A stretch of 41,900 bases of DNA from Basidiobolus meristosporus CBS 931.73 (taxonomy: Eukaryota; Fungi; Basidiobolomycota): the NCBI GenBank assembly GCA_002104905.1, contig MCFE01000726.1, positions 1 through 41,900 of the forward strand, in the 5' to 3' direction. Under the pieces are notes generated by a model, which saw nothing but the letters and a program-made list of their open reading frames with translations, was not told the origin of the DNA and made no database searches. A program made the translations under genes and the position numbers. Within the stretch, counting starts at the first letter, position 1. The number at the start of each line of letters is the position of its first letter. Below, piece by piece: positions 3,826 to 40,608 of the stretch.

Positions 3826-3937
3826 TGGTTGTTTCTTCACTAGTCATGCGTAATGGTTGTTTCTTCACTAGTCATGCGTAATGGTTGTTTCTTCACTAGT
3901 CATGCGTAATGGTTGTTTCTTCACTAGTCATGCATAA
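3826..3937. repeat. Tandem repeat, 28-bp unit TGGTTGTTTCTTCACTAGTCATGCGTAA, 4 copies
   Basis: Copies start at 3826, 3854, 3882 and 3910; the last has one mismatch at 3934. Confidence 0.97.
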
Positions 3938-17026: not shown

Positions 17027-18745
17027 TCACAGGTCCTCTTCATCACTGGAGGCCATCCATGACCTCGATTGATAGGAGTCAGGTGTGGGGGCCGATCTTT
17101 CAAACGCTTGATCAACGCAGTTGCTACTTCTACGTTTGCGAGCATCGGCTCGGTAACGCTCATTTTCGGACTGTAGCTCCAAAACACGATCCATCAGATG
17201 GTGATTCTCTTCAACGAGGTAGCTTATGCGGTTCACAAAGCCATCAAGGGTGAACTTCTCCTCTTCCTCGTCGTCAGCATAGGTATGATTTGGCGAGTAG
17301 TTAGGGCACAATGCAAACAACTGCCGCAGAGTGTCTTTGACATCTTCATTCTCCTCCCGAAGCAAGTCGATGTCCCGAATAGACTCTTCCAGCTGGCTGC
17401 GCAAGTTGTGCACTCCCTTATCTTCTAGACCAGATTCCGGATTTTGGCTAGACGTGCGTTGCAATGCCTCTATTTGGTTGGCTAGTTCATTGCGTAATGA
17501 TCTCTCTTTTTCGAGCTCAATTCTGTACCGTTCTTTCTCAACAATGGCGTTTTTCAACGAGGAACGAACGAGCTCATTAACTCGCGGGTTATCCACATCT
17601 GTAGCGGCAGACTTCCTTTCGTAGTCGACTATCTTGTCTTGTGCGTGTTGTAGCTCAGTCTTCAGAGAGTTGACTTGTTCGGTCAGCTGATGGATGGTTT
17701 CGTCTTTCCCCGATTGCCACGAGTATCTGTGATCTACAGAGTACCAAGATTTACGCTCACGGTTCATCACATCGCTGTAGTCCACCGAATTCCGAACCTC
17801 ATCTCTCGAGTCCATGATGGCGTCCAGCTTGGAGCTCATCTCGGTCAATTGCGTTTTCAATATGGATATCGCATCGTTTTCTGAATGGCTGCTTGGCTGT
17901 GCTTTGGGGGCGGGGTTTTTGTTCTGGAACGATTGGCCCAGAACTGCCGCCGTGTGCTCGAGTAGTTTTTGGTGAATGTAGTTTGTGCTTTGGGAAAGCC
18001 GCCAGATTTCTGAGGATAGTTGACCTACTCGCCTCTCTGAGCTCTCGAACTGATCACGTGCTTGCCTGCAAAGTTTCTTGTCTTTTTGAGCTCGAACCAA
18101 AGTAGCGGCGCCGTCTCTTAACCTCATTTCACTCTTCAGCTTGATTTTTAGACTTTCAATGGTTTGTTTTTGCTTTTCGAATTCCTAACAGAATCGATCG
18201 CGAGGAAGGTAGGGGTTAGAGGGGTTATGGCATATCGTGGGAAGTGAACACAAACCTCCTTGGATAGTATGTATTCGTTCCAGGGAAAGGGGCGAATTTC
18301 TGAATCTCAGACAAGGCCTCCTCCAGCAATTTTTCCATGTTCTCTGGGCTCTCTTCCTCAATAGGAAGTGGGTTCCCGATGCTCTTTGCTTTTTCCTCAA
18401 AATTCTCCAGTAGGACCCCAATCGAAGGCCTAGGGGATTTGTCAAAGTTTCTCCGAGTCCTCACCGACGCGGCCGATTTCTCTATGCCATTGAGAGTCGC
18501 AATTCTACTCCGAAACTTCTCATATTCAAGCGCAGGGGGAGCTTCTGGTGTATTAGCCACTGGTTGCTGTTGGGTTTTCTTAGTGTTACGAAAAAGGGAA
18601 GTTACCGGGCTGACCAGGTTGGAGACCTTAATGTGATCTTGAAAACCTAGGAGGTAAGCAAATTGAATATCATCCCGAAGACCACTCCGCCCCGACACTT
18701 ACTGAAACGTTTACGCTCTGGCGTTGCGGGAACGGCTGCGTCCAT
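17027..18745 (-). CDS. Uds1-type domain coiled-coil protein, paralog 2 (apparent 1-nt frameshift near 18290; possible pseudogene or assembly error)
   Basis: Exons 18745-18703, 18646-18256, 18184-17027. Same two intron positions and phases as paralog 1 and shared motifs (PERKRFS, VSNLVSPVTSLF, PRPSIGVLLENF, MRLRDGAATL, KLLEHTAAVL). Exons 1+2 sum to 434 nt, one short of the phase-0 junction. Confidence 0.72.
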
Positions 18746-21188: not shown

Positions 21189-23257
21189 CTACGTGCACGA
21201 CGGTGCATCTTCGGGGAGGGTCAGGTTAAGCACGATTGACAGTATCCCTGCCAAAATATACCCGGTTGAAGCAATGGTCTCAAGCGCCTCGTAGAACCCA
21301 GATAACGCCACATTCGTGGTGGCTGGTAAAACGTGGCTAAACCAGCCAGGCACAAGCTCCACTCCCAATGCCAATGCCAAAGAGGCAGCCACGATGATGC
21401 GATCCCTGCGCGTCCAGTCCAGGTAGGCGAGTATACGGATGCCTGAGGTTGCAACGGAAGAGAACAGTAGGGTGGTCATGCCGCCCATGACTGGCGAGGG
21501 AATTGCCAAAAATGCGCCCGAAATTTTGGCGAACATTCCGCAGATGATCAGCAGCCCTGCACAAACATAGCCGGCCACCCGGGATGCACATCGAGTGACC
21601 GCAATGACACCATTATTTTGACTGAACGTAACCACTCCCATGGATGTGGCTGCTCCGCTGAGTACGCCGGACAGCCCGTCAGCTAGTAGGCCGCCTTGCA
21701 TTCGGGAGTCGAAATCTGGCCCCTCGACCGCAATTCCAGAAACATCACAGCTAGCCGTGAGATCGCCTATACATTCGATCAGAAAGTCAACATAGACAAA
21801 CAAAAGTGGGATGACTCCTGGCCCGTAGACCGAGAGCTTGAACGTTTTGACCCAGAGGAAGGTGACGATGGGTGCGCTTTGAATGCTGGACGAATCAAAC
21901 ATGCCGACTGCTCCTCCGATAGCGCATCCTATTTTGGGCAATTAGTAATCGTAGCGATGAATGGGATCCACTTTCATTACCAACTGCAAGTCCAATCACG
22001 ACCGCGATATTCTTCAAAAAGATGGAGCCGACCATCTCGACCACGATGATGGTCACGAACACACTCGCACCAAGACCAATATAGGCCGGTGACCCCCATG
22101 GGAAGCTGCTCGGTGCTTCGGTAGTCGGACATTTGCTGAACATCCCGGTGTCCGGACGAGCGGAGCATGGGCCAGTTCCACCCGCCCAGTTCTGCATGCC
22201 TGATATAATAAGCGAGGCCCCTATCACCGTCAGAACAACGCCGGTGACGATTTTGGGGAAGATTCGTCTCATCACACGCGAAGGCAGAAAGCTAATGGAA
22301 ATGGAAATCGCCGCGCAGAGCATCTATACAATGTCGTCATCAACCTCCGCTATTTTCATCGGCAGCCTCGACTACTTACCTGGGTTCCCAGAATGGCCCC
22401 GAATGCGTCAGGACATGGGTGATAAAGATATGTTCCGTCGGACTGGAGCTCTCTGGCGCATGACCCATTCTTATACATTGACCCGATGATTGCTTGTGCG
22501 GCGGGGATGTTAGAGAAAGCTACGCCGGTGATCTGAAGTAGTCTGCTAGCGGGGTGAATACCAATTCTCAGAGAACCAAGAGGAATGAGAAGTACCCTGC
22601 TCCTATGAAGTATTTGGTTCTCGGGATGCGGAAGCGAACGATTTGGATAATACTAGAGCGCCTTAGTTAAATCAGGTCAATTCTTATGGTGTCATAGCGC
22701 ATTACCTCATCAGACCCGACATCTGGAGCAAGATGCTGGTCAGCTTTACGCAGGGAAGAATATGTTGTGACAAGGAACCTTACCATCAATGATGCAGAGA
22801 TCATGTAGGAACGCGTCTCCTGGTCCAAATTCAAGAAGGTCTCTCCTGCACCGCTGATCATGATTGTGGGACTAATGATGCCTCCGATAACGGCCAAGAA
22901 ATCTACAGGTGCGTGGATTAGTCGGATTACTGGGGAGGTTGCTCAATGATTTCGATTTACGTTGGAGGCCCATCAGTAGGGCTACAGATATGGGAATTTC
23001 ATCATCTGGTCCGAAGAATGGAGACGTATTGACCTGGTTGCGTTGGAGGAATGGGATCCGTGGCATACTGAAGTCACGTTAACACAAAGTGTCCAGATGG
23101 ATAATGTTTCGAACCGTTACCAAAGTGCACCATAGTCATATTCTCCAAACCACCCTCGACGACTCGTAACCTTCTCGACCAATGTCAACTTCAGCGGGTA
23201 GTTGAGAGACAAGTCTGATTCCTTTTCCAAGGCCATGTGTTTGATATCGTCTACCAT
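21189..23257 (-). CDS. NCS2/NAT-family purine permease, UapA/UapC-like (xanthine/uric acid type), multi-intron
   Basis: N-terminus WFGEYDYGAL|CMPRIPF...PFFGPDDEIPISVALLMGLQ(H). TM8 LIECIGDLTA. NAT signature FSQNNGVIAVTR (~21591-21626), matching UapA FAQNNGVIALTR. Internal exons and the 3' end not all resolved. Confidence 0.92.
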
Positions 23258-23500
23258 GTTGTATAGCGTGGAGAGGTGTTGGTGGAGGTTTTTATGCAGA
23301 AATTCCCTTCCCTTATCTTTAATTTGGTTGAAGGGAACGGGGAAATACTGGTAATGGTGCTACCCCGACCGGTTTCCAGTGGAATGATAGAGAATCGACA
23401 CCCAGATAAAACCCATCTTATCTCGGATCGTCTACATGGGAATCCGGGGAATATAAATTCGATTTTCCGGTTGCATCCTTTACCTCGTCATTGTATAAGA
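23258..23500. promoter_or_regulatory. Divergent promoter between permease and deaminase 1, with four HGATAR sites and a TATA box
   Basis: TTATCT 23313-23318, TGATAG 23385-23390, AGATAA 23404-23409, TTATCT 23418-23423; TATAAA 23452-23457. Confidence 0.55.
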
Positions 23501-24569
23501 ATGTTTTCTATCAAACGCTTGGCTATCGTTGCGGGACTTGTTGTCTCATTGCTTCAGGGAGAAACATCAGCCACCTCGTGTGACCTCGAGAGTCAGCTCG
23601 CGAAAGATGAATGCTACATGAAGATTGCCTTGGACTTTGCCAAGGCCCACAACCCTGGATTCCCATTCGGTGCCTTGATCGTGGACCACAAGAAAAACGA
23701 AATCTCCTGCTACGGCGCGAACAGCAACAAGCAAAACAAGCTGATGCATGGTAGGCCCTCGTCCACTATCTGCTCCCCGTTTCCGTTGTCTTTACCTTTC
23801 TCTTTGCGTTTCTCTGTTCTCCCTCCCTTCCTTCTTTCCTTCTGGCTCACTCCACCTCATGTGCTCGGACTGTGATACTCATGCCACTTCATCCTAGGTG
23901 AGACCGCAGCCTTCTGGAAGTAAGTAGTCACGCATACTTGGCTGGCCAGAGGAAGATCCACTCACCAACCTGTTCTGCTACACAGTTGCACCCAGATGTA
24001 TCCCTCGCCCACCAACGACGACATGAACGACCCAGGACTCGACTGGTCCCAGCAAACACTCTACACAACCGGTGAGCCAGTGAGTATCTTCAGCGCTGGC
24101 TGCGGTATGGCCATATGACACACAATAGAGTATAACCAGAGTTTCCCATGTGTGTAGTGTCCCATGTGTGCGTCACAGAGTATCTACCGAGGAGTGTCCC
24201 GAGTAGTGTGGGGAACATCCATTCCAGACATCAACAAGAGCGGCCGTCAGCAGATCATGATTCGCATGTGAGTATCACTCGCCCCTCTCTAACAACACAA
24301 AACTGTGTGCTGATTTCAGTTTTAGGGAAGAAGTGGTTAACTCGGCCCGTTTAGGGGGGAACAGACCGGACAAGCGAGTACCGGAGTTGGTAGGGGGAGT
24401 GTTGAAGAAGGAGTGCGATGCAGCCTTTTGGGACGCGTTTGCAGTCTTCCGAGATGACGATTATGTCGAGGGGATGAAACTTTGGGGAGAATCGGAATAC
24501 ATACATAGTCACGAGCCTCAATCCTCAAGCCCAGGAGAGGCTGAGTTCTACGCACGCGATGAACTCTGA
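23501..24569 (+). CDS. Signal-peptide zinc-dependent deaminase (cytidine/guanine/TadA-like superfamily), copy 1, C-terminal RDEL
   Basis: Exons 23501-23750, 23898-23919, 23986-24079, 24158-24267, 24326-24569 (239 aa). FPFGALIV, HGE (HxE), YTTGEPCPMC (PCxxC); signal peptide; ends FYARDEL. Confidence 0.88.
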
Positions 24570-24749
24570 TATCCCAGGAAATATATGGTTCGCAGCCACT
24601 CCATGTAAAATCACGCTGTAAATAACTCGATTTTTATGAATAAATTCATACTACCATTCAGGAGTCCTTTTCTTTTACTTGGGCCAGATGGAGCCTTCAT
24701 TTTTGTTCTTTGTAAAGGCTAAAGATGCCTATGAACGTAATCCAAAGGG

Positions 24750-26170
24750 TAACATGAATTTATTGGTAGAAATCGAGTTATTTACAGCGTGATTTTACAT
24801 GGAGTGGCTGTGAACCATGCGCGTCTTCGCATCCAAGTGCTCCTCCCCCCTCTGTTGTGCTTTCTCCGATTCAGATGGACAGCCAAGTTAGTGCTCGTGG
24901 GCCTTGATAAATCCCAGCTTTCCCCACTTCTTCATCCCTCTCAGGTAATCCTCGTCGCGGAATACTGCGAATGCGTCCCAAAAGGCTGCATCGCACTCCT
25001 TCTTCAACACTCCCCCTACCAACTCCGGTACTCGCTTGTCCGGTCTGTTGCCTCCCAATCGCTGAGAGCGGACCACCTCTTTCCTATACCATGGGTGAGT
25101 ATGTTCTCCCCGACTGATAGAGACGGGTGAGTGATACTCACATGCGAATCATGATCTGCTGACGGCCGCTCTTGTTGATGTCTGGAATGGATGTTCCCCA
25201 CACTACTCGGGACACTCCTCGGTAGATACTCTGTGACGCACACATGGGACACTACACACATGGGAAACTCTGGTTATACTCTATTGTGTGTCATATGGCC
25301 ATACCGCAGCCAGCGCTGAAGATACTCACTGGCTCACCGGTTGTGTAGAGTGTTTGCTGGGACCAGTCGAGTCCTGGGTCGTTCATGTCGTCGTTGGTGG
25401 GTGAGGGATACATCTGGGTGCAACTGTGTAGCAGAACAGGTTGGTGAGTGGATCCTCCTCTGGCGCAGCCAAGTATGCGTGACTACTTACTTCCAGAAGG
25501 CTGCGGTCTCACCTAGGATGAAGTGGCATGAGTATCACACAGTCCGAGCACACTGAGGTGGAGTGAGCCAGAAGGAAAGAAGGAAGGGAGGAGGGAGAAC
25601 AGAGAAACGCAAAGAGAAAGGTAAAGACAACGGAAACGGGGAGCAGATAGTGGACGAGGGCCTACCATGCATCAGCTTGTTTTGCTTGTTGCTGTTCGCG
25701 CCGTAGCAGGAGATTTCGTTTTTCTTGTGGTCCACGATCAAGGCACCGAATGGGAATCCAGGGTTGTGGACCTTGGCAAAGTCCAAGGCAATCTTCATGT
25801 AGCATTCATCTTTCGCGAGCTGACTCTCAAGGTCACATGTCGCGGCAAACACTCCCCCGTGAAGCAGCAAGCTGGTGATCCCAGCGAGAAGTAACAGTGC
25901 GCACGATGGAGAACATATGGGAGAAAGAGGGTTGAGCGAAGGTGATGTGTATTGTGGATACTGTGGTGGTGAGCGAGTGGGAAGCCTCTATATATTCGCG
26001 ACTCTTGCCCAGGGAATCCAGACCAGGTATGGGTTTGGTGATGTCTACTACACAAGTGTTCTCAGGCAAACCTGTTGGAATACCAAGGGAATGTTTCTCC
26101 TCTGGATGGTGAGTATGGCGGTGTGTTCCGTGTGGAGAGCAGAGGGTATGAGGGGAGCAGCACACAAATC
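24750..26170 (-). repeat. Left arm of a ~1.4-kb near-identical inverted duplication (partner 26855-28270)
   Basis: The reverse complement matches 26855-28270 through 5' flank, introns and 3' flank, ending at AAATTCATGTTA. Weaker similarity extends a further ~50 bp into the spacer. Confidence 0.93.
24888..25916 (-). pseudogene. Deaminase copy 2: inverted duplicate of copy 3 with a +1 frameshift in the signal peptide
   Basis: Exon 1 (25916-25666) is 251 nt versus 250 in the other copies: GTTACTTCTCGCT versus GTTATTCTCGCT (extra base at 25891). Remaining exons, HGE and PCPMC intact; ends KAHEH. Confidence 0.8.
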
Positions 26171-26854
26171 GGTAAGCACCAAATCGCACCTGGTGCGAGT
26201 GACCGGGTGTGAATATCTTTCTGCTCAGATTACAGATGGAAAGGCATTTCTGCGTAGCTTTAGATACCAGGTAAATTCGCTGACAACCTGTTTCGATCGG
26301 ACAAATTCTATTTGGCACTTTACCTTCACGAAAAACCTAGTGTGATGCAAAAGAAAATTCCCCAGCCTCTTAACATTTATGCGATAGCAAGTCACCTATC
26401 AACAAAGCAGAACGTAAAAGAATGGAACGGAAATTGGACTAGCCCAATCACCATAGATCCAAATGATGATATCGTCTGTTCGCTTGTTTAATGTTCGTTG
26501 AAGAGCATCTACCATGGATTGTCTGTTGAGTGGTAACACGATTAGTCGGCAAACGTTTCCATAGAAACGAAGCTATTTGCACTTTCATGATCAGCGCTTC
26601 GGATAAGCCTTTCTGGTATCTACATGTAACGCTAATCGGAAATAAGTGATTATAGAATTTAATCAGAGATAGCGGTGATAGGAGAGTAACATTAGTATTA
26701 TCGTGATTAATGATCAGGCAGATTAGTACCTCATTCCCCTCCGGTCTAATGGCTTCCGGAGGATTTACCTGGGATAAAGTACTACACAATCATATATCTA
26801 CATCCAAATGAGAAGATATACGCACTCTCACCATGTGCGATTCAGTGCTCATTG

Positions 26855-28270
26855 ATTTGTGTGCTGCTCCCGTCATACCCTCTGCTCTCCACACGGAACA
26901 CACCGCCATACTCACCATCCAGAGGAGAAACATTCCCTTGGTACTCCAACAGGTTTGCCTGAGAACACTTGTGTAGTAGACATCACCAAACCCATACCTG
27001 GTCTGGATTCCCTGGGCAAGAGTCGCGAATATATAGAGGCTTCCCACTCGCTCACCACCACAGTATCCACAATACACATCACCTTCGCTCAACCCTCTTT
27101 CTCCCATATGTTCTCCATCGTGCGCACTGTTATTCTCGCTGGGATCACCAGCCTGCTGCTTCACGGGGGAGTGTTTGCCGCGACATGTGACCTTGAGAGT
27201 CAGCTCGCGAAAGATGAATGCTACATGAAGATTGCCTTGGACTTTGCCAAGGTCCACAACCCTGGATTCCCATTCGGTGCCTTGATCGTGGACCACAAGA
27301 AAAACGAAATCTCCTGCTACGGCGCGAACAGCAACAAGCAAAACAAGCTGATGCATGGTAGGCCCTCGTCCACTATCTGCTCCCCGTTTCCGTTGTCTTT
27401 ACCTTTCTCTTTGCGTTTCTCTGTTCTCCCTCCCTTCCTTCTTTCCTTCTGGCTCACTCCACCTCGTGTGCTCGGACTGTGTGATACTCATGCCACTTCA
27501 TCCTAGGTGAGACCGCAGCCTTCTGGAAGTAAGTAGTCACGTATACTTGGCAGACCAGAGGAAGATCCACTCACCAACCTGTTCTGCTACACAGTTGCAC
27601 CCAGATGTATCCCTCACCCACCAACGACGACATGAACGACCCAGGACTCGACTGGTCCCAGCAAACACTCTACACAACCGGTGAGCCAGTGAGTATCTTC
27701 AACGCTGGCTGCGGTATGGCCATATGACACACAATAGAGTATAACCAGAGTTTCCCATGTGTGTAGTGCCCCATGTGTGCGTCACAGAGTATCTACCGAG
27801 GAGTGTCCCGAGTAGTGTGGGGAACATCCATTCCAGACATCAACAAGAGCGGCCGTCAGCAGATCATGATTCGCATGTGAGTATCACTCATCCCGTCTCC
27901 ATCAGTCGGGGAGAACATACTAACCCATGGTATAGGAAAGAGGTGGTCCGCTCCCAGCGATTGGGAGGCAACAGACCGGACAAGCGAGTACCGGAGTTGG
28001 TAGGGGGAGTGTTGAAGAAGGAGTGCGATGCAGCCTTTTGGGATGCATTCGCAGTATTCCGCGACAAGGATTACCTGAGAGGGATGAAGAAGTGGGGAAA
28101 GCTGGGATTTATCAAGGCCCACGAGCACTAACCCGGCTGTCCATCTGAATCGGAGAAAGCACAACAGAGGGGGGGGGGAGCACTTGAATGCGAAGACGCG
28201 CATGGTTCACAGCCACTCCATGTAAAATCACGCTGTAAATAACTCGATTTCTACCAATAAATTCATGTTA
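26855..28270 (+). repeat. Right arm of the ~1.4-kb inverted duplication
   Basis: Reverse complement of 24750-26170; spacer about 680 bp. Confidence 0.93.
27108..28131 (+). CDS. Signal-peptide zinc-dependent deaminase, copy 3
   Basis: Exons 27108-27357, 27507-27528, 27595-27688, 27767-27876, 27936-28131 (223 aa). MFSIVRTVILAGITSLLLHGGVFA signal; HGE and PCPMC; ends KAHEH. Confidence 0.88.
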
Positions 28271-29015
28271 GTTTGCTTAAAGACCGAAAGATTCAAGGTT
28301 TCTCGTCTAGTGCTAAGTAAGATAAAGTTTCACCAGGATCAATGAGGAGCAAGTGTATCCGTAAATTACAGCAGACTACGTGACTATCACAACTCCAGGA
28401 CTGGCATAGCAGATTCCGATTTTATCCCAGGCAATGCTTGCTTGTAAGGTATGATCTACGGGGCGAGGTGTTGGGAAGGAACTGGTGGATTAGGGTTAGA
28501 ATCGTATACACTTGCTACTAGTAGTTAGTTGAAAACCGTGCTGTTTCTGTTATGTGAATCTTTATAAAAATTACCAAATAAGTATGATGTATAACGCTGA
28601 TCCTGGATCTCCTTGATGGCTGTAGAGTGCTGGGAATACGCCGGTTATTGTTGGGACTTTGGTGTATGTGTAACTAAGATGACGCCTGGTTCTGATGAGA
28701 TCATAGTGACCCGTTTCCGTTGAGTAACCGCTGCATGGCTCAACAGGTTTACCAGGGAAGTTTTCAAAATATTGAGGCGTTGGATACGATATACCTCCAA
28801 AGTACCATATATGGGGGTGGCGATCATCCTACTTGCAATAAAGTATCGATACAATATTCGTAGGGAAATGCCGATTCATATTCTTAGTTCTCCACACGGG
28901 TCATCAACACACTACGTGGGAATACCAAAAAAGATGGAGACTACACGTAGGCTGGACATACAGAGTATATAATCCCACCTACACACACATAGCAGGTCCA
29001 CTTCTCAATACTACA

Positions 29016-29943
29016 ATGCTTTCGCTGAAAAAGGGTGCTTTCCTTACTGGGCTTGCCGCCTTGTTGCTTCAAGGTGAGGTGTTTGCCTCCTCGTGCAATT
29101 CGGAGAGTCAAGTAGAGAAAGACGAGTGTTACATGAAGATCGCGTTGGATTTCGCCAAAGCGCACAACCCGGATTTTCCTTTCGGTGCTTTGGTCGTGGA
29201 CAACAACAAAGATGAGATCTCTTGCTATGGTGTGAACAGCAGCAAGCAAAATAAATTGTTGCATGGTAGGACCGTTCATATGCTTTTCCCGAGGACTGGA
29301 TGCTTAATGCTTATTCTAGGCGAGTCGGCTGCTTTCTGGAAGTAAGCAAGCACCTACATTTGGCAGACCAGAGGAAGATCCACTCACCAACCTGTTCTGC
29401 TACACAGCTGTACCCAGATGTATCCCTCGCCCACCAATGACGACATGAACAACCCAGGACTCGACTGGTCCCAGCAAACACTCTACACAACCGGTGAGCC
29501 AGTGAGTATCTTCAGCGCTGGCTGCGGTATGGCCATATGACACACAATAGAGTATAACCAGAGTTTCCCATGTGTGTAGTGCCCCATGTGTGCGTCACAG
29601 AGTATCTACCGAGGAGTGTCCCGAGTAGTGTGGGGAACATCCATTCCAGACATCAACAAGAGCGGCTGCCCACAGATTATGATTCGCATGTACGTATTAA
29701 GATATTCACTTCGCAGTTGTGATCAAGATTACTCACCAGCAATACAGGAAAGAGGTGGTCCGCTCCCAGCGATTGGGAGGCAACCGACCGGACAAGCACG
29801 TCCCAACCTTGACCGGAGGAGTGTTGAAGAAGGAGTGCGACGCAGCTTTTTGGGAGGCATTCGCAGATTTCCGTGACGAAGACTACCTCCAGGGGATGAC
29901 AGAATGGGGCCAGTTAGGGTATATAAAGGCACATGAACATTAG
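29016..29943 (+). CDS. Signal-peptide zinc-dependent deaminase, copy 4 (most diverged)
   Basis: Exons 29016-29265, 29320-29341, 29408-29501, 29580-29689, 29748-29943 (223 aa). HGESAAFW, PCPMC; ends KAHEH; TATATAA at 28966. Confidence 0.88.
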
Positions 29944-31599
29944 CTTTCAAACCCAGTGTGATCGGCACTCCATGTATCGCGCATCAAATTCTAGCCAATA
30001 AACTCCTCGATCATCTGACTCCGAGAAGCAGGGTAGACGGCACCAGTGTAAGACTCCCACCCGTCCAATGATTTGTTCACTGCATCTTGACGCAAATCAC
30101 GTTTTGCATATTTTGTAAATAATACAACATGAGTACCGCAGCTAGGGTTTGGCGTTTGAAAGTAAAAAAGTTTCTTCGTCGAGAGTTTATTTTATACATT
30201 TTGTAAATGACACAACACAAGTACCCGAAACTAGAGTTTGGCGTTTGCAGAGGAGGACTGGCTTTGCCGCTGATCTGGTTGGAGTAGAGATGACATCCGT
30301 GGGACTCGCTTTTGGTGTATGATCCATGATGCATTGAACGTTGCCAATTTTCAAAACTCGGTTACCGTCTTCCTTGCCTAACACCACCGATCAGCTACCT
30401 ACCGGAAATTCAGCCGAGTAAACGGTGCAGGTCCCGTCAAATTGGGGCTAAATCTTTTCTCGTTTGGACGTTGCTTCTCACGCACTCTGTACACAGGCAC
30501 TTCGACTAGGCGACTGAACAGGTTTCCGTGAGAACTGCAATGAGGTGGGAGTTCAACAACATTGGTTTTCGTATATATTTCATAGAAGGCCAGGTCAATG
30601 CCAGTAGTACTGTACCATTATTGTTCTTTTGTAACTTTTGTGGTGTCGCTCATTAGTTGCACTGTAGGATCATGCCTGGTATGAAATTTATACACCTGAT
30701 GTGTAAGTATTCCATATAAAATTTGCTTGTAGAATCACTGAAGCCTCCTGCATATCAGCCTCAATATATGTGTACATCTGCTGCAATTGAACCAATTCTA
30801 GCACCTGAGTCCAGCTAATAGCATAGTCTGGCAACATATCAATGCCTAATATTGTGAGAAACCAGGGTATTATGGCATCATTCAGGCAGGCCTTTTGTGA
30901 ATTCAGGATGGCCTTACACCCTATGAAGAATTATTGTGATAATCCTGTCAAAAGGCCGTCACAAATTCTAAGTCCTGTCACTAAGAGGTATTGATCCCAT
31001 CAGGACACCTTGCAAAGACCATCAAAAAATAATTGCACCCTGATATCACAAAAAACTTGGTCAAAATTTCTCATCACAACAATACAAAAGTGGCTTATGA
31101 TTGGTTGTCTGCCAATTTTTGCACTTTCTGATCCTGGACACTCTATCACCTCCTACATTTGTGTGCATTGATTGGCTATTGCCTCTTTTTTGTTGTAAGA
31201 GTCTTGGAGATATTGGAAGTGATTTAGGAGGACAAGTAGATTGTAGGGTTTTCACTTGATGATATATTGAATGTAAAGTAGTATTTATACTTTTACATAG
31301 TATTGGCATTACAAACCCATAGAATAGATTAAGGAGGGTCCCAAGAACATGTGTGCAAAGTTTGGGGCTGTTTGGACAACTTTGAGAATTTTCATGTTCT
31401 GTGTACCTGGTATTTTGGATGAAAGTATTCTAAGTACATCCCAACAAGGAATTTGGTCAGTATCCTCTACAGATCTGAAGGTAATGATCTAAGTGACTAA
31501 GTTAGGTGAATATTTAGGTGGAATTACAAATTTTTACAACATTTTTCACACTCCTTACTACCTGAATCAGCCATTTCACTTACTTTTCATGCATACAAA

Positions 31600-33110
31600 T
31601 TGATTTATTTCTGTTGGCACTTCAGCTGTACCTCAATCCAACCAGACCAGAAATAGCCCAAATTACTATATCAATGAGAGTACAAACTTAGCCCATGCCT
31701 ATTCTGTCCATATTGATGAGACTCAGACTGTAAAAGAGGCCCAAAATAGTCCTCAGACAAAGCTTTGGCAATCTCCAATGATCAAGGAGTGTCAGGCCCC
31801 AATGTAAAATCATACTTGGGACTTGGTCAAATTACCAGTCAACCAAAAATCAATCATATGCAGATGGGTCTTGAAGACAAAATACAAGGCTGATATGATG
31901 TTGAAAGATGTAAAGCAAGACTTGTAGCCAAAGGATATTCTCAAACAAAATGACTTGACTACACCAAGACCTTTGCATTGGTAGCCAAGCTTAATTCCAT
32001 CAAATCAATAATGGCTATTGCAGCCAAATATAAGTTTCTTGTCTATCAAATGGATGTAAAAGCTGCATGCTTAAAGGGAGAACTTGAAGAGAATGTGTAT
32101 ACAGACTAGACTGTTGGAATTGCTGACCAGTTAGCCTCCATTTTGCTTGCAAGCTTAAAAAGTCTCTACAGGGTCTCAAACAATCACCAAGAGCCTGGAA
32201 TTGCTAGATGGACTTTTATTTGGAATCATGGAGTTTTCAAAGGAGTACTGCTCACTATTGCATACACCATAAGCCAGATGGAGCAAGTCCAGCTTTACTA
32301 GCCCAATATGTGGATGATCTTATTATAGCCACCAGTAGCCCAGAAACACTAGAAGTGACTAAATTCAACATATCTCAGGAGCTCAATATGGCCATCTGGG
32401 AGAACTCAGTTACTACTGAGAGATAAAGTTCTCCATAGACAGAAGGACCCAATCTATTACATAAAGTTAGTCCAAGCATATGCAAGATATACTAAAGAAG
32501 TACCAAATAGAAGACTGTAAGCCAGCAGCTACCCCAATGGAGACAAACCTTAACTTGGTCAAAACTCAACCAAATTAAGAGATCTTAGCGCCATCTCAAA
32601 GCCCTGACTTTCTGTATCAATCTATGGTCAGCAGTCTGATGTATATCATGCCTAGAACACATCCAGATACCTCATATTCAGTGGGAGTTGTCAGCCAACA
32701 AAATCAGAACTATGGATCTGATCATATTGCAGCAGTTGAGTGGATTTTTAGATACATAAAAGGAACCGCAGATATCTGCTTAACATACTCCTATAAGGAT
32801 TCAGAACAAGATCTTTATGGATATACTGGTGCTGATTGGGGATGAAATATAGAAGACAAAATACCCACCACAGGATACACATCTCTTTAATGCAAAGGAG
32901 CAACTTCATGGAGATCAAGAAAGCAACCAACTGCAGCATTTTTTACCACCAAGAAAACAACTATTATATATTCTAAAATAATCAAGGATTTATAAATTTG
33001 GTAGAAATCCATCTTTTCATGCTAGAAATAAGCACATCCATATTACTCATCATTAAATATGCAAAGTTATAGAAATAGCTTGGCTAACTTGGTTTACTGT
33101 CCTTAGAGGT
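31600..33110 (+). mobile_element. Degenerate Ty1/copia retrotransposon pol (RT-RNase H) relic
   Basis: Broken frames read TVKEAQNSP...NHTWDLVKLP...CRWVLKTK, RLVAKGYSQ, QMDVKAA, LKQSPRAW, YVDDLII, RTHPDTSYSVGVVSQ, YTGADW, NPSFHARNKHI. Many stops and frameshifts; no LTR recognised. Confidence 0.9.
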
Positions 33111-33479
33111 GATTCTACAGTGGAATATATGAATTGTGTAAGGGGAGGTAGAAAAATGATATACCATTTGGTAAATTAGTTTGGTAGCATTATACAGAAC
33201 TAGCTGTAGGTCACCCTACTGCTGTGATAATGCCATCAGAAGCTTGCAATGAGGCTGTCAAAACACAGTCAGGTTTTCTGCCAAATAAGGCAATTGGATG
33301 TACAGGCTAGTCAGATCCACTCAAATAGTTGTAGAGCCCACTAAGACTGCAAGAATGCCATGCCACCCATGGCAATATACTGTACAAACACTGTTATGTT
33401 TTTACCTTTATTTGGCAGCAAAATTAGCCAAATGCTGTTGTGATCCCATCATAGGATTGTGTAGTTTGTCACTGTCAGT

Positions 33480-33950
33480 TGGGAATGAAGGCTTCTAGGA
33501 CTTTTGTTGCCATGGATAGTGGGAGAAAGCCTTGTAGTGCAATAGCTCTTGTAACATCAGAGAAGCTTAACCAGATATCTTATTGAGTAGATTGGGGTGG
33601 AAGGTCCACAGCACATAGCATAGATCTCCTTTAATGTGTCAGAGGAAATCCAGTAGTAGTGATGGGACTGGTAAGAAAAGACCATTCAGAAGAGTAAGTC
33701 ATATTAAGATTAATAGATGATTGAGTTAGTGTGTACAGACTTGACTGGGTGTAGTTGGCAATAGTTATCTGGTTCTCCATGCATTATGATTAAGTCCCCA
33801 TCAATTGCCACATATCCATTCACTATGTTTCAAATCACCCTAAAATCTATATGCAAATGCAAAATCTGTATATGATGTAGTTTTATCTGTGTCAATGCAA
33901 TTGAAGATGCATTGTGCCTAATATATGGAAAGTTTAACAATCTGTTGTGT
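33480..33950. repeat. Diverged direct-repeat copy of 36010-36500 (probable transposon relic)
   Basis: Shared anchors TTCTAGGA(C/T)TTTTGTTGCCATGGAT, TAATGTGTCA(G/A)AGGAAATC(C/T)AGTAGT(A/G)GTGATGGGA, TTAAGATT; otherwise clearly diverged. Confidence 0.7.
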
Positions 33951-34249
33951 TGTAATATGATTAGTTTGAGGCTAGCTCTAACATTTAGAGACTAATTAAC
34001 AATATACAATACCTTCCAGTCTGCTAGTACTCAAATAGTATATTAGGAGTTGAATATACCAATAGGAGATATAACTTTCACTGATAGCCTCAATCTGAGT
34101 CTCAAAAAGTAATATAGGCAGTGTTTTTCACTTCTACAACTGTGCTCTGACCTTCTGTCAGCTCTTAGGCTAATTTATAGTACAACAACTTTCCTTTTTT
34201 GAAAGCCACCTCCCTTTCTGAGAAAACATTTCCTGATATGGAAACTATG

Positions 34250-34485
34250 GACTCCCCTTTAACTTACAGGGGTGTGTTGTAGGAGTCTCTAAAGGGGTTT
34301 TTAGACCTGAAGGGGTGTCTAAAGAGGTGTCTTTAAAGTAATGGGGCTTCTTACAGTAGTCTTGCAAGTGAACTTTACACTAAAGGGGTGCCTAAAGGGG
34401 CTTCTTTAAGTTAAGGGGCTTCACAAAGGGGTCTCTGAGTTGGTCTTCAGACTAAAGGGGTGTAAAGTTGGGTGTCTTAGAGGGG
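34250..34485. repeat. Cluster of short (C)TAAAGGGG(T)-like motifs
   Basis: About nine imperfect copies in ~235 bp, plus one inverted copy (CCCCTTTAA, ~34254). Confidence 0.7.
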
Positions 34486-35229
34486 ACCTGTCCAGCAGAA
34501 AAGTAGTATTATTCTTGTAGAACATAAATTGGATACTTGTGAGCCTTGCACTCTCTTTACCAATGCAGCACTAATCAGAGTTAGAATACTCAAAAGTGCA
34601 AGTGATGCAGCGGAAGTCTTACAACCTTTTAAGCTGGTAATTGTAGTGTGGAGATTCTGGAAAGAGAGGCTCTTGTTTATTTTCAGCTGGGGAAGTCAAA
34701 TATATTTAAATTCTGAAGGACCAAGTCTGTAGGCAATTGGAGAAGCAATATGAATGGTATATAGTAAAAGTTTATTGTGATGTAGATCTTGAATGAGTTT
34801 TGGCCTCATATAAGTAATATACTGTGTTCTATATTACTAAAGCTAAGTTGCTTCTAAGAGCAGTATAAACCAGACTAATCAAGGTGCAAGATGTAGCACT
34901 GCCAAATGCTTCAGTAGTGATCCTTGTGGAACCAAACCTTGGGAAAGATGATGCAATTGTCTTGAACTACTGTCATTTGCCATGTTCCAAAATGCATTTT
35001 TTCTGCAATCTGAATCAAGCTATTGAAAACCAGTAATCACCAAATTTCTGATAAAAGTAATATCAAGGTTGTTTCACATTCAAGACAGAGCCCTTGTAAA
35101 TAAACACCCTGCATACTTAAATCTTCATCCATTATACTGGTGCAGCTATTTAATCTGTTTTGAACCTACCCAATTGGTCACATACTAGGTATGATAACTC
35201 ATCCAATCAATAAAATCAGAGATATACTT

Positions 35230-35640
35230 TCTTAATGTGCACAATAGGATATTTGATGGCTCCTGGTTTCAGGATATTCCTAGATTATTCAACCACTGAT
35301 TTACTATCTAATTGGGGTGATAGTAGCAACAATGGTAAATATTAGTTTAATTTGTGGTGTAATATGCATCTATATCTATTTACATTAAAGAAGCAAGTTC
35401 ATATTCTGGATATACCTACCACAGTGGTATCCAATTGCACATATGATGCAAGTGTTGCAAGTTGCCGCAATGATCCATACTAGCCTCATTGTGTCATATT
35501 ATGCCATAGTGTACAACATGGACCAACATAGTGCCAAATTATCCAAGAGCAATCTTGCCTACTGGCTGATACAGCATTGTGCCTTATTACTCTTAATGAC
35601 TGAGGATTGCACTGCACACCCTGACACAGTATGATGGAAT
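35230..35640 (+). mobile_element. Highly degenerate tnp2/CACTA-like transposase fragment
   Basis: RIFDGSWFQDIP resembles the DIFDG motif at 36740; a downstream HSG...CKCCK resembles the GHxG..CxxC segment. Frameshifted. Confidence 0.35.
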
Positions 35641-36480
35641 AAGTCTTTAGTATAAGCTAATTCTGCCATAAATTGCACCTCTCTGCTGAGTCTAGGATAA
35701 TTCACTATCCTGTGTAGTTTATCATGCTTAATTCCATCAGCTGGCTCACTAAATCAGATGTTATTACCCTCAATGCAAAGAGTGTTTAAGACTCCATGCT
35801 GTGTGTGTTGTTTTTGCCAGAAAAGAAGTGCATCTACCCTTTGAAGATCTATTTATCATCACTAGGAAGGTATCCAAGATACTCCCACTACAGAACCTGT
35901 TATTGCACACTCTGGGATATGGGAGTCAATTGAAGCATTTAATCCCAGTATTTAAAGCTTGCTTTAAATGAGTCATTCCCTTTGCAAGATGGTGCTCCAT
36001 TGCAGCCAGCCAAAAATGAAACCTTCTAGGATTTTTGTTGCCATGGATGGTGGGAAAAACTATGTATGGCAATGGTTATGGTAAAAGCCAAGAAGCTTGG
36101 CAAGTGATCTCTATGAGTATATTGGGGTAGTGCATCCAGACTACATGGTGTAGATATCCTCTAATGTGTCAAAGGAAATCTAGTAGTGGTGATGGGATTT
36201 ATGAGAAAGGACTACTCAGATCAATATGTCATGTTAAGATTGATCAGTGAGGAGTAGCACCAAATTGACATGATCAGCTTGTTTTATCTGATTTCCAATA
36301 CATTATGAGCATATATCCATCAATTGCAATGCATCCTATGATTATGTTGCAAAAGTTATCCATAAACAATGACTTGGAATTTTTATTGATGAATCACTTG
36401 CAAGTCAATGATCACCTAAGAAATCTGCAACTGAATTTATCTGATTTGCGTCAGCTCAATACAAAATGCTTCATGCATAA

Positions 36481-36553
36481 TAGACTTGCTCTGTGGATGT
36501 TGATACATTGAGCCATGAGCACTAAAAAATGCCATAGTGTGCCAGAAAGGCTT
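36481..36553 (+). repeat. Short terminal fragment of the foldback element
   Basis: TAGACTTGCTCTG...ACATTGAGCCATGAG...GCCATAGTGTGCCAGAAAGG matches the first ~75 bp of 38278. Confidence 0.7.
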
Positions 36554-36672
36554 AGTAGTTAGAAAATACCACCATTGCAAACTGCTCAAAATGTCAGGTA
36601 TTCACCAACAGAGGAAGAGAATGTTGTTCACACACCCAATGCATTCCAGTATTATCCTGTCTAAGGAAGCCC

Positions 36673-36918
36673 ATGCAGCCCAGCATATACTGTGAATCTA
36701 TAAAGTACTGCACTCTGTATCAATCAAACACAAACATTTCAAGCATATTTGATGGTAAACTTTACAAAGAACTAAGAGGTAAGGGCTACTTTGAAGGTAT
36801 GAATGACTATGCCTTTGCCTTGCCACATAATAGATTCTCATTGAACCAGTGCTCTACCAGCAAATCCTGCTGGCCACTGATTCTCATCAGTATGAATCTG
36901 CCCTGTGTCTTATGTTGA
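36673..36918 (+). mobile_element. Transposase family tnp2 (CACTA/CMC-EnSpm-like) fragment
   Basis: SIFDGKLYKEL..GYF...DYAFAL...SCWPLILISMNLP matches the tnp2 N-terminal pattern; truncated by a stop. Confidence 0.7.
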
Positions 36919-36919
36919 A

Positions 36920-37260
36920 ATAATTAGGAGCGCAGCTAATAATATTATCAATAGATGCTGTATTAGCACTTGGATAAATGACATATTTCACAATATTAAC
37001 TTGGAAATTAGTTTGTAGGATATTTGCTTATTATTGGAAGTCAATGAAGTACAGAATTTTAAGAAGACCTGAAACTTGCTCAAATTAGCCAAAACTTAAC
37101 ACATATACTCCTGAGACTCCCCTAATAGTGAGCAGATAGTTATATGTATGTAGTTTTGCAATCAGTAGAGATACTATGTTGCAACTCAGTAGGTCAATAA
37201 GTGAACATCATGTAAAAATTCTGATGCTTCATTTTATTTCCCATATATATCTCTAAAGCT
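36920..37260. repeat. Diverged repeat; empty-site homolog of the sequence interrupted by foldback element 1 (38180-38277 plus 39014-39250)
   Basis: Shared blocks TAGCACTT...AAATGACATATTTCAC, GTACAGAATTTTA, TACTCCTGAGACT, GTAGTTTTGCAAT, ATACTATGTTGCAACTCA, TCAATAAGTGAA. Confidence 0.8.
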
Positions 37261-38277
37261 GCAAGAAGTAATGAGCCCCAAGCCTGCTATGTCTTTGGTG
37301 TCTACTTTGCTTCAGTGCTGTTTCTTTATTCTGGACAAAGACTGCCTTGTTTACCTGAACCAACCAAAGTACATGCATATAATATCTATAAACACTGTGG
37401 AGAGTATATGAGATACTATTGAGGAACATACTATTTGCCCTATACTGGTACCTATTTCACTAGGAACTAAGTGATTGCCAATCATATATACAAACATAGA
37501 TCAGATGTTGATCTTGCTATTATGATCAGATCAATGTACATACAGGTCCTTGCTATGGGCCACACTGCAGTAAGTAATAGTAATGCATTAGTCCAGAAGA
37601 AGAAACATTAGATCAACTGGTAACAATCAAGACTACCATAGTACTGACAAGTTGTTGGCTCTAACAGATGATATATGGTGTATACAAGGGAGGTTATTAT
37701 CCACAACCAGTTATGGATATACCGAGAATAGTCCAAGTGAAGTTGACTATATACCAGAACTGTGGATGATCCAAATCTCCTGGTAAGAAACTATATCATA
37801 ACTTCATAGACCAATCATGCTCAAATAAAAAGGCAGCAGAAAGCCTAAAAGCATGGTTACCTAATGGTGGACAGAATACAAGGATATAATTGGTATCTGA
37901 AACGCTTTACTCCAATTAAGTGGATGATACTCATTCATAGATATTTTGTGATGAGATCAGAATTCAGACTCAGAGTAATTTGATCTGAAGTATGTAATCA
38001 ATAGTATAGGCTTATACTTAGTTATCACAGATAATATGCAATCCTTAACATTCACTGCACAATATATTAGTCCAACAGGTTTTATGGTTATTTGCAGGTT
38101 TAGTTTCAACTGAAAGATACACAACATCACAGAGAGTTCAAAAGGATATGAATATACTATGGGAGTGGGAGTGTTGAAATAACTAGGAGTCCATATAATT
38201 ATTAGTCTATTATGACCTAGCACTTAGGTAAATGACATATTTCACATTATCAACTTAAAAATTTGTTTGTAAGATAT

Positions 38278-39013
38278 TAGACTTGTTCTGTTGGATAGTG
38301 CCACATTGAGCCATGAGTGCCAAATGATACCATAGTGTGCCAGAGAGGTCAAGTGAGCCTATACTTGGCCACAGAGTGTGAAACATAGCTCTGCATCTTC
38401 ATGTAAAGCAGCCCCTGTGTTTCACCCATTGCACAGGAGAAAATCCATTTTTTGACCTTTTTTTGTGGATCAATGTAGCTCAGGATGTGTAAGAGCACAG
38501 GAGAACTGAAGATATGCATCTGGTACTCAATACCCATAGCACTCTGAATCTAGCTCCTGTAGCTTGTATCATGTAACAAAAATGAATGGCACTATCTTGG
38601 TCCACTGGTACTATCTGGCACTATATTTAAATATTAGCCCTAAAGTAAGATCTATACAAAGCACTTATAGTGCTAGATAGTACCAGTGGACCAAGATAGT
38701 GCCATTCATTTTTGTGACATGATACAAGCTACAGGAGCTAGATTCAGAGTGCCATGGGTATTGAGTACCAGATGCATATTTTCAATCTGCTTGTGCTCTA
38801 ATACATCCTGCACAACATTGATCCAAAAAAAAAGGTCAAAAAATGGATTTTCTCCAACACAATGAGTGAAACACAGGGGCTGCTTTGCATGAAGATGCGG
38901 AGCTATGTTTCACACTCTGTGGCCAGGTAGAGGCTCAATTGGCCTCTCTGGCACACTATGGCATCATTTGGCACGCATGGCTCAATGTGGCACTATCCAA
39001 CGGAACAAGTCTA
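38278..39013. mobile_element. Non-autonomous foldback/MITE-like element, copy 1 (complete): 348-bp inverted arms with a 40-bp spacer
   Basis: Left arm 38278-38625 starts TAGACTTGTTCTGTTGGATAGTGCCAC; right arm 38666-39013 ends GTGGCACTATCCAACGGAACAAGTCTA; absent from the homologous site at ~37020. Confidence 0.88.
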
Positions 39014-39532
39014 TTTGCTAATTATTAGAAATTAGTGAGGTACAGAATTTTAGGAAAATCTGAAGCTTGTCCAAATGAGCTGAAACTAGTCACATGTACT
39101 CCTGAGACTTCCCTGGTAGTGAGGTGACTGTTGCATATACGTAGTTTTGCAATAAGTATAAATACTATGTTGCAACTCAATATATCAATAAGTGAATATC
39201 ATATATATCTTCTAATTCTCCATTTCACTTCCAACATATATCTTTAATATTTCAACATCTTTTGGTGTCAGAGCAGAAAGCTGATGGTAGTGTTACTGGT
39301 AGCTGTGCCTGACTCACCATCAACCTGGATAGTTACTGTTTCCATTGTTGAACAAACTCTGTTTGCTCTTCAGTGAGATATTACTAAATGACCCACATAT
39401 CAAGCATGTATTACTATCTGCATTGGAGCTACTCTAGCCATCAGCAAGTTAGATGGCTTTTCTAGTTACAACAAATTGTATTGCTGCTGAATATGTGAGA
39501 TCCAGGGAATATATTCAATAACCTATACACAT

Positions 39533-40182
39533 TAGACTTGTTCTGTTGGATAGTGCCACATTGAGCCATGAGTACCAAATGATGCCATAGTGTGCCAGAG
39601 AGGTCAAGTGAGCCTATACTTGGCCACAGAGTGTGAAACATAGCTCCGCATCTTCATGCAAAGCAGCCCCTGTGTTTCACCCATTGCGCAGAAGAAAATC
39701 CATTTTTTGACCTTTTTTTGTGGATCAATGTAGCTAAGGATGTGAAAGAGCACAGGAGAACTGAAGATATGCATCTGGTACTCAATACCCATGGCACTCT
39801 GAATCTAGCTCCTGTAGCTTGTATCATGTCACAAAAATGAATGGCACTATCTTGGTCCACTGGTACTATCTGGCACTATATTTAAATATTAGCCCTAAAG
39901 TAAGATCTATAAAAAGCACTTATAGTACCAGATAGTACCAGTGGACCAAGATAGTGCCATTCATTTTTGTGACATGATACAAGCTACAGGAGCTAGATTC
40001 AGAGTGCCATGGGTATTAAGTACCAGATGCATATCTTCAATCTGCTTGTGCTTTAACACATCCTGCACAACATTGATCCAAAAAAAAAGGTCAAAAAATG
40101 GATTTTCTCCTACACAGTGGGTGAAACACCAGGGCTGCTTTGCATGAAGATGCAGAGCTATGTTTCACACTCTGTGTCCAGG
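39533..40182. mobile_element. Foldback element, copy 2; right arm truncated by LTR insertion
   Basis: Left arm 39533-39880, same 40-bp spacer at 39881-39920, right arm 39921-40182 breaks at ...GTCCAGG|TGTTATGA. Confidence 0.88.
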
Positions 40183-40550
40183 TGTTATGATCTGCCGCTT
40201 GAATGTTTAAGTTAGATCAGTTTTTAGTCAAATCAGTTAGTATATGTTTAGGTTATCAGTACATCAGTATTATCTATGAGATCAGTAGCATTAGTCAGCA
40301 AATGAATCAGCAGATCCTTATCAGACAGAAATAGATATATTAAGTAGGATCTTATTGGGTGATGATGATGCAATCAAATGAGTCATCAGCCACAACCTAC
40401 ATTAGGAAATACAATTAGTCAGCAATTGATCTGGCAAAATGTATATAAGGAGCTGCTGGAACCTCAATAAAAATCAGTTCAAGTTTTAGTGAATACAATA
40501 CTAGCTAAACTCCCTATTCCTCTACAACTCTTATACCAAGACTTGTAACA
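40183..40550 (+). mobile_element. 5' LTR of a Ty3/gypsy retrotransposon (368 bp)
   Basis: Termini TGTTA...TAACA, immediately followed by PBS-like TTGGTAGCAGCG (40551-40562), complementary to an initiator-Met-type tRNA 3' end. Confidence 0.85.
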
Positions 40551-40608
40551 TTGGTAGCAGCGATAACCAGAAACCTCCCTCCTGAAGAAAGAAGAAACCA
40601 CCCTCAAG

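Follow-up and report, generated by a model that had tools for sequence, protein, structure and literature searches.

The 41,900-nt window analysed here is one whole contig of Basidiobolus meristosporus CBS 931.73; Basidiobolus is an animal-associated fungus of reptile and amphibian guts. Between positions 21189 and 29943 the contig carries a gene for a UapA-type nucleobase permease and four copies (c1-c4) of a gene for a zinc deaminase with a signal-peptide-like N-terminus. Permease and first deaminase copy lie head-to-head, with 243 bp between the permease ATG (23257, minus strand) and the c1 ATG (23501, plus strand). This spacing, and the coordinates and motifs in an initial annotation of the window, are borne out by our rebuilt gene models. 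The annotation also had four deaminases following the permease: four copies are indeed present, but only three are intact genes, c2 being frameshifted and on the opposite strand. The features are as follows.

21189..23257, minus strand: UapA-type NAT/NCS2 nucleobase permease gene, 8 exons, 560 residues, intact (rebuilt gene model)
23257-23121, 23067-22961, 22902-22784, 22722-22706, 22652-22596, 22542-22380, 22323-21981, 21928-21189, minus strand: permease exons
23258..23500: divergent promoter of permease and c1, 243 bp, four HGATAR sites (23313, 23385, 23404, 23418)
23501..24569, plus strand: deaminase copy 1 (c1), 239 residues, signal peptide, HGE and PCPMC motifs, C-terminal RDEL
23501-23750, 23898-23919, 23986-24079, 24158-24267, 24326-24569, plus strand: c1 exons
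24842..28177: inverted duplication bearing c2 and c3; arms at about 24842-26201 and 26823-28177, 97-100% complementary, 621-bp spacer (inverted repeats I2, I4, I5 and I6)
24888..25916, minus strand: deaminase copy 2 (c2), inverted, frameshifted in the signal peptide, otherwise near-identical to c3
27108..28131, plus strand: deaminase copy 3 (c3), 223 residues, intact, signal peptide, no endoplasmic reticulum (ER) tail, ends KAHEH
29016..29943, plus strand: deaminase copy 4 (c4), 223 residues, intact, the most divergent copy, no ER tail

Structure, history and expression of the genes

The seven permease introns are all GT-AG and 52-61 nt long; alignment to the Umbelopsis and Chlamydoabsidia orthologues settled the two difficult junctions, one at a 17-nt micro-exon and one at a GTACTT donor. 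All four deaminase copies have five exons, with intron 1 splitting HGE and intron 3 splitting PCPMC. Our c1 model is identical to a database protein of this strain (P0001, "cytidine deaminase-like protein", 239 residues). Compared with c3, c2 contains one extra nucleotide near 25891; beyond codon 8 it is read in another frame, which runs into a stop after 27 codons; its public annotation (P0019, 184 residues) begins at an internal Met and lacks the signal peptide. For c4 there is no database protein of its own among the matches listed. The C-terminus is longer in c1 alone, where it ends in RDEL; c2-c4 end in KAHEH.

Copies c2 and c3 are the product of a recent inverted duplication, their upstream 300 nt matching at 280 positions. 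The rest of the array has a more complex history. All four copies have been homogenised from intron 2 through exon 4, and intron 3 is identical (78/78) among c1, c2 and c4, whereas introns 1 and 4 of c4 defy alignment with their counterparts in the other copies; because of this pattern we read the array as a mosaic bearing the mark of gene conversion between old paralogues. In the unhomogenised parts, synonymous sites between c4 and both c1 and c3 are near or at saturation, with nonsynonymous divergence (dN) of just 0.1-0.2; for exon 1, where these sites are saturated, dN is 0.11-0.2. Between c3 and c4 the ratio of nonsynonymous to synonymous divergence (dN/dS) is 0.15 when the first 204 codons are taken and 0.09-0.19 for exon 5; between old paralogues, wherever it can be computed, it is 0.07-0.2. 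With synonymous sites so near saturation, ratios of 0.07-0.19 argue that the tail-less copies c3 and c4 have been kept by purifying selection.

Transcription of c1 is seen directly. A sequencing run, X3, although labelled as DNA, yielded a spliced 488-nt contig in which exons 1-4 are joined exactly at the modelled splice sites and which runs into c1 exon 5 without mismatch, so confirming the c1 gene model by RNA. Of the words sampled from the 8.7-kb stretch, 22% were contained in X3, more than can come from the c1 exons, which would fit the presence of permease mRNA as well.

A permease of the UapA type

PF00860 matches the last exon of the permease alone at 111.8 bits (4e-32), above the gathering score (cut-off 27), and the C-terminal half of the protein encoded there (242 residues) aligns to UapA structures at about 1e-73 to 1e-72. 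Canonical members of the NAT family are defined by three motifs: QH in transmembrane segment (TMS) 1, E-x-x-G-D in TMS8, and [TS]-[FY]-[AS]-[QEP]-N-x-G-x4-T-[GRK] in TMS10 (PMC5972032). In the last of these, Phe at position 2 and Gln at position 4 touch the base and determine specificity, position 3 is assigned to transport kinetics, and replacement of the Gln in UapA (Q408E) makes the carrier promiscuous, accepting hypoxanthine, guanine and uracil (PMC5972032). The spliced 560-residue Basidiobolus model contains all three motifs, QH at 81, ECIGD at 366-370 and QNNGVIAVTR at 418, the signature being TFSQNNGVIAVTR, and it has Phe and Gln at both specificity positions; the initial claim that the UapA specificity residues are retained thus holds throughout. 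Because QH, ECIGD and the signature reproduce the UapA configuration save for Ser in place of Ala at position 3, the permease is best predicted to be a xanthine/uric-acid carrier.

The deaminase family

The deaminase belongs with the zinc enzymes of the cytidine deaminase (CDA) fold: PF00383 matches c1 at 56.4 bits (cut-off 25), residues H83, E85, C123 and C126 are invariant among 55 aligned relatives, and the AlphaFold2 model of c1 (pLDDT 91) adopts the fold. Foldseek returns TadA, ADAT2, the Nitrosomonas guanine deaminase NE0047, plant guanosine deaminase GSDA, Fcy1 and Msd, all at probability 1.00, with NE0047 having the highest TM-scores normalised by query length (0.55-0.56). In a single-sequence search TadA (5e-8) and Fcy1 (3e-7) lead and Bacillus subtilis GuaD is weak (E = 0.19); with a family profile the four groups are roughly tied (TadA 2e-24, GuaD 1.6e-23, GSDA 1.6e-23, Fcy1 1e-21). 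The guanine-type substrate that had initially been proposed by way of GuaD and GSDA is therefore compatible with these data, but neither sequence nor fold singles it out, TadA and Fcy1 matching about equally well.

Two more specific identities were rejected. For TadA itself, the NCBIfam equivalog NF008113 scores 31.9 bits against a cut-off of 150, and the protein has in addition a signal peptide and an ER tail. As for bacterial polymorphic-toxin deaminases, a MafB19-like Pfam model does match (31.8 bits, cut-off 27), but more weakly than PF00383 over the same stretch, a Bd3614-like model stays below its cut-off, the protein is a single domain, and dN/dS is 0.07-0.2.

An exhaustive search recovered 712 relatives, 10 of them at E <=1e-30. 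The named close relatives are from Mucorales, Umbelopsidales, Basidiobolus and the dictyostelid Heterostelium, and there are more distant ascomycete members in Daldinia, Elasticomyces, Colletotrichum and Zalaria. Identity across fungal orders is 60-74%. A tree that leaves the fungal root unplaced groups the Basidiobolus copies as sister to Umbelopsis (support 100/99); no case for horizontal transfer is made from it. The family is now annotated just as "cytidine deaminase-like" or "nucleoside deaminase", the Phycomyces annotators having chosen "secreted cytidine and deoxycytidylate deaminase". Literature searches gave no relevant report on secreted or extracellular guanine deaminase, on deaminases in Mucorales secretomes, or on a thymine hydroxylase-permease-deaminase cluster, and the permease-deaminase module is probably undescribed, no paper on it having been found.

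Entry into the secretory pathway, and retention in it

The N-termini of the Basidiobolus copies are hydrophobic and resemble signal peptides (best 10-residue Kyte-Doolittle window 2.4-2.9), and nearly all full-length fungal sequences compared begin in this way. The pair Cys27/Cys38 is present in 27/27 fungal sequences and in 6-7 of the 8 other eukaryotic members, but in none of the 23 bacterial ones; an NCT sequon occurs in 26/27 fungal sequences and an N-x-S sequon at 148-150 in 24/27. Cys70/Cys92 and the NCT sequon are likewise near eukaryote-specific. Such eukaryote-limited Cys pairs and NCT sequon are as expected for a protein that folds in the ER, whether lumenal or secreted, and the signal-like N-termini, Cys pair and sequons listed initially are all upheld.

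The C-termini point to where the protein may go from there. The ER-retrieval pattern of PROSITE (PS00014) is a C-terminal [KRHQSA]-[DENQ]-E-L. Signals of this type (RDEL, KDEL, HDEL, RQEL, HEEL) end 10 of the 27 full-length fungal sequences, and three more carry the near variants KTEL, HTEL and HDEF; we estimate that such a tail is expected by chance in roughly 1 in 10,000 proteins. Tailed and tail-less paralogues occur together in several Mucorales, Parasitella and Benjaminiella for example. The ancestral deaminase thus looks to have been ER-retained, and the tail appears to have been lost repeatedly, c2-c4 of Basidiobolus included. In the array only c1 combines a signal peptide with a tail (RDEL), c2-c4 lacking the latter: c1 is predicted to be retained in the ER and not secreted, and c3 and c4, without the tail, would be the sole candidates for true secretion and are probably secreted. 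The term "extracellular" that was first applied to the system accordingly does not fit the promoter-sharing copy, which ends in RDEL; only c3 and c4 are both intact and free of a tail.

Among 80 bacterial loci, about half of the deaminases have an N-terminal twin-arginine-like motif followed by a hydrophobic stretch, and about a quarter have no N-terminal extension. Export would then be a recurrent trait of the clade: fungal and amoebal members would use a Sec signal, and about half of the bacterial relatives examined one of the twin-arginine translocation (TAT) type.

Some of these loci have features of their own. Local bacterial patterns are PhoB/PhoR adjoining the deaminase in methanotrophs, an ABC ATPase in Kitasatospora and CIA30 in Planctomycetes. 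In locus L008 (relative P0055; 2321-6929) a predicted exported deaminase lies beside zinc-independent L31/L36 paralogues, two cobW-type GTPases and DUF1826, a neighbourhood typical of zinc starvation (Zur-type). In the Heterostelium locus (L009) a weak cobW-like gene lies 2.7 kb upstream of the deaminase, which has no transporter adjoining it.

A GATA-rich shared promoter and a conserved gene pair

The 243-bp promoter holds four HGATAR sites where 0.9 are expected (2000 shuffles, P = 0.0095). Enrichment is found also in the orthologous promoters of five Mucoromycotina loci, and when the shared promoters of six species are pooled 34 sites are observed against 14.2 expected (Poisson P = 5.6e-6); there is none within 400 bp upstream of c2, c3 or c4. 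HGATAR is the site of AreA/Nit2-type nitrogen regulators. The GATA-rich shared promoters fit nitrogen scavenging, and the module is probably nitrogen-regulated.

Linkage was compared at seven Mucoromycotina loci (L001-L007). In Umbelopsis (three assemblies), Gongronella and Chlamydoabsidia a Xan_ur_permease gene on the minus strand is head-to-head with a deaminase gene on the plus strand, which is followed on the same strand by a gene with DIOX_N and 2OG-FeII_Oxy domains, that is, a 2-oxoglutarate (2OG) oxygenase; Absidia has the same order with a partial permease. A tblastn search with the Basidiobolus permease model found the linked permeases, its orthologues, to be 60-73% identical to it (about 70% in Umbelopsis), and confirmed the partial state of the Absidia gene. 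Conservation of the linkage, which the initial annotation had named as a check on its own proposal, is thus found in four further genera, in Absidia with a permease remnant. Genes outside the trio vary by genus (Dicer, SET, fasciclin, F-box, a thiamine pyrophosphate enzyme, leucyl-tRNA synthetase); because the flanking genes differ in this way while the pair stays, it is selection and not general synteny that conserves the pair. In Gongronella butleri (L005, 4474-9316) two tandem NAT permease genes adjoin the deaminase, so that there it is the transporter that has been duplicated and not the enzyme.

The best solved match of the clustered oxygenase is the Neurospora thymine dioxygenase (6.5e-31), within a very broad family that has members of unknown function about 47% identical in Dikarya, algae and bacteria. 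A tblastx search with six orthologues as queries found no such oxygenase on the Basidiobolus contig; B. ranarum has a 70%-identical fragment. Farther afield, Daldinia eschscholtzii (L090, 6089-11017) has a distant homologue of the deaminase with a TauD-family 2OG dioxygenase on one side and an NCS1 (Transp_cyt_pur) permease on the other; this trio matches the Mucoromycotina cluster in its three roles while the partner families are unrelated, and we treat it as a lead, not as support.

A candidate nucleobase-scavenging module and the alternatives to it

We favour, by a modest measure of confidence, the view that permease and deaminase form a conserved module, probably under nitrogen regulation, where deamination outside the cytoplasm would feed a UapA-type xanthine/urate importer; what we infer in this is the identity of the substrate, the compartment and the link to uptake. 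The proposed scheme would run as follows. A predicted xanthine/uric-acid proton symporter and a zinc deaminase are transcribed divergently; the latter would enter the secretory pathway and represents an apparently uncharacterised clade of the TadA/guanine deaminase/cytosine deaminase superfamily. Outside the cytosol the enzyme would hydrolytically deaminate an amino-oxo-purine, guanine being the most likely since its product, xanthine, is what a UapA-type carrier imports; ammonia would be released, and the xanthine or urate formed would then be imported by the permease. Given the carrier, conversion of guanine to xanthine would be the most economical chemistry, an assignment we put forward tentatively and should not be surprised to see fail. 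The ancestral enzyme and c1, bearing the ER-retrieval tail, would probably work within the lumen of the ER or at an early stage of the secretory pathway. The gene would then have been amplified in Basidiobolus, c3 and c4 shedding the tail and so becoming candidates for secretion and c2 being broken.

Several observations weigh against this proposal. An ER-retained enzyme is hard to reconcile with the scavenging of external purines, and transcripts of the tail-less c3 and c4 were not seen in the single data set X3, whose contigs show presence and not absence. The family appears about equidistant from TadA, guanine deaminase, guanosine deaminase and cytosine deaminase, so that sequence does not predict the substrate, and the thymine-dioxygenase-like third gene of the relatives, absent from the Basidiobolus contig, would accord with a route through pyrimidines no less than with one through purines. 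The linkage also has its exceptions: Mucor velutinosus has a long interspersed nuclear element at the permease position while keeping the oxygenase, Phycomyces has lost both partners while keeping the leucyl-tRNA synthetase neighbour, no transporter lies near the deaminase in two of three ascomycete relatives (Elasticomyces and Zalaria), and no conserved neighbour emerges among the 80 bacterial loci, the commonest family reaching 11/80. Finally, GATA sites are used by regulators other than nitrogen ones.

Of the alternatives the best placed, which we nevertheless hold to be unlikely, is a housekeeping enzyme of the ER: the deaminase would act nowhere but there or in the early part of the secretory pathway, and its substrate would be some amine-bearing heterocycle of the lumen, for instance a pterin-like compound or a nucleotide or nucleobase that arises as a by-product of glycosylation. 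The link with the permease would then reflect shared regulation without a substrate-product relay. The promoter-sharing copy ends in RDEL and is the only copy seen as RNA; PROSITE-type tails end 10/27 of the fungal sequences; and the Cys pairs and glycosylation sequons are eukaryote-specific. There is also a precedent, in that purine-catabolic enzymes of Arabidopsis are spread over cytosol, peroxisomes and ER (PMC6245725). What such housekeeping would leave unexplained is the tight tie to a nucleobase importer, kept in orientation across orders without other shared synteny, and the independent, repeated loss of the tail, in Basidiobolus c2-c4 and in several Mucorales. Nor is any need for deamination in the fungal ER lumen known.

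The clustered oxygenase raises a different alternative, in which the enzyme would convert cytosine or 5-methylcytosine to uracil or thymine, the permease would carry the pyrimidine, and the relatives' dioxygenase would act like thymine-7-hydroxylase in oxidising thymine toward uracil. The match to the Neurospora enzyme, and the place of yeast cytosine deaminase among the closest solved relatives of the deaminase, speak for this route; yet the permease has the Phe and Gln of the xanthine/urate-specific UapA and not the uracil-linked Glu version (PMC5972032), the breadth of the 2OG family means that a best match to thymine dioxygenase is not orthology, and the gene is not on the Basidiobolus contig. 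We consider the pyrimidine route improbable. Still less probable is a role in detoxification, the exported deaminase inactivating toxic base analogues or aminated antibiotics of competitors (of the 8-azaguanine type) and the permease having an unrelated or a scavenging role: exported forms are indeed widespread in soil bacteria (Streptomyces, Kitasatospora) and fungi, and NE0047, a structural neighbour, was crystallised with bound 8-azaguanine according to its entry titles, but the fungal gene is linked to an importer and not an exporter, the GATA-rich promoter points to nutrient control, and strong sequence conservation does not suggest an arms race. That the protein is a secreted effector or toxin which mutates or edits nucleic acids of host or competitor, in the manner of bacterial polymorphic-toxin deaminases, is scarcely credible in spite of the MafB19-like and Bd3614-like matches, the signal peptides and the tandem amplification in an animal-associated fungus, given the stronger match to the general PF00383 model, a single domain with no delivery or translocation module, the lack of any immunity-like neighbour in the loci examined, the low dN/dS, the 60-74% identity across fungal orders and an ancestral form that bears an ER-retention tail.

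Returning to the scavenging module, a broader version of it can be drawn, which we offer as speculation with small prospects of being right in full. In early-diverging fungi, and in the wider Sec- or TAT-exported TadA-like clade of bacteria, amoebae and fungi, nucleobases would be deaminated outside the cytosol; in fungi this would be ER-lumenal nitrogen scavenging hard-wired to a UapA-type importer, with the clustered 2OG oxygenase an independently recruited hydroxylase acting further on the imported base; and the Basidiobolus isoforms would be truly secreted, suited to guanine- or urate-rich animal excreta. To our knowledge, purine and pyrimidine deaminases of the CDA fold are regarded as cytosolic. 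If the module exists as proposed, an extracytoplasmic first step would be added to fungal nucleobase utilisation and a function given to a widespread family annotated only generically. The Basidiobolus array offers a natural experiment at one locus, a predicted ER-retained copy standing beside tail-less ones.

Other features of the contig

The remaining genes of the contig are ordinary eukaryotic ones: a CAP/PR-1 protein, Uds1/HR1 proteins, Kre9, bromodomain/GATA proteins and a UCH hydrolase. The final 11 kb (31000-41900) is AT-rich (GC content 0.35-0.41) and holds a single open reading frame (ORF) of at least 110 residues, near its end (41421-41777), so that the deaminase array sits at the border of a gene-poor region. 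Uds1 and HR1 domains are shared by two paralogous ORFs, one on the plus strand (5820-6836) and one on the minus strand (17027-18127), which are separated by 10 kb. Between them, at 7194-10097 on the minus strand, a 967-codon open frame encodes an extremely proline-rich product in which up to 12 Pro follow one another and LPTRSAPPPPPP units recur; the frame lies within a 3-kb stretch of high GC content (0.56-0.59) and strong GC skew (0.24-0.48) that includes a 60-nt tandem repeat at 9450-9665. The product has no match in Pfam and looks like a segment of a verprolin/WASP/formin-type actin regulator. Two unrelated, near-perfect tandem repeats of 28 nt x 4 (2086-2194 and 3826-3937) lie about 1.7 kb apart in an AT-rich stretch, both downstream of a CAP/PR-1-type gene fragment (890-1420, minus strand).

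Comparison with known systems

The closest known counterpart of the permease is UapA of Aspergillus nidulans, a uric acid-xanthine/H+ symporter of the NAT/NCS2 family (PDB 5I6C). The two have in common the PF00860 family, the three motifs and the Phe/Gln specificity residues; they differ in that the Basidiobolus protein has TFSQ where UapA has TFAQ, Ser replacing Ala at motif position 3, and in that its gene is paired with that of a predicted exported deaminase. We know of no uapA gene paired in this way.

For the deaminase, the best matches in sequence and fold are TadA and ADAT2 (PDB 7CPH, 1Z3A), with which it shares the H-x-E ... E-P-C-x-M-C core and a TadA-like C-terminal helix (GVLxxEC). 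Unlike them, the Basidiobolus family has a signal peptide, an ER tail, Cys pairs and glycosylation sequons, together with a family-specific invariant Asp after the EC of that helix; and no encounter with tRNA is expected of an enzyme that is lumenal or secreted. Yeast cytosine deaminase Fcy1 (PDB 1OX7, 1UAQ) aligns in the Asn preceding HxE, but it is cytosolic, reads SPCDMC and not EPCPMC, and lacks signal peptide and Cys pairs. The clustered oxygenase of Mucoromycotina matches the Neurospora thymine dioxygenase (T7H, PDB 5C3P) at the level of family only.

In its compartment the deaminase may be likened to the ureide (purine-ring) catabolism of the plant ER, an analogy that implies no homology: the plant ureide enzymes belong to unrelated protein families and act later in the pathway. 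With the guanine deaminases GuaD (1WKQ) and NE0047 (2G84) and the Arabidopsis guanosine deaminase GSDA (7DBF) it shares both fold and catalytic motif, and their product, xanthine or xanthosine, is one that suits the adjacent permease. These enzymes are cytosolic, and the alignment to GuaD and GSDA ends before the C-terminal helix.

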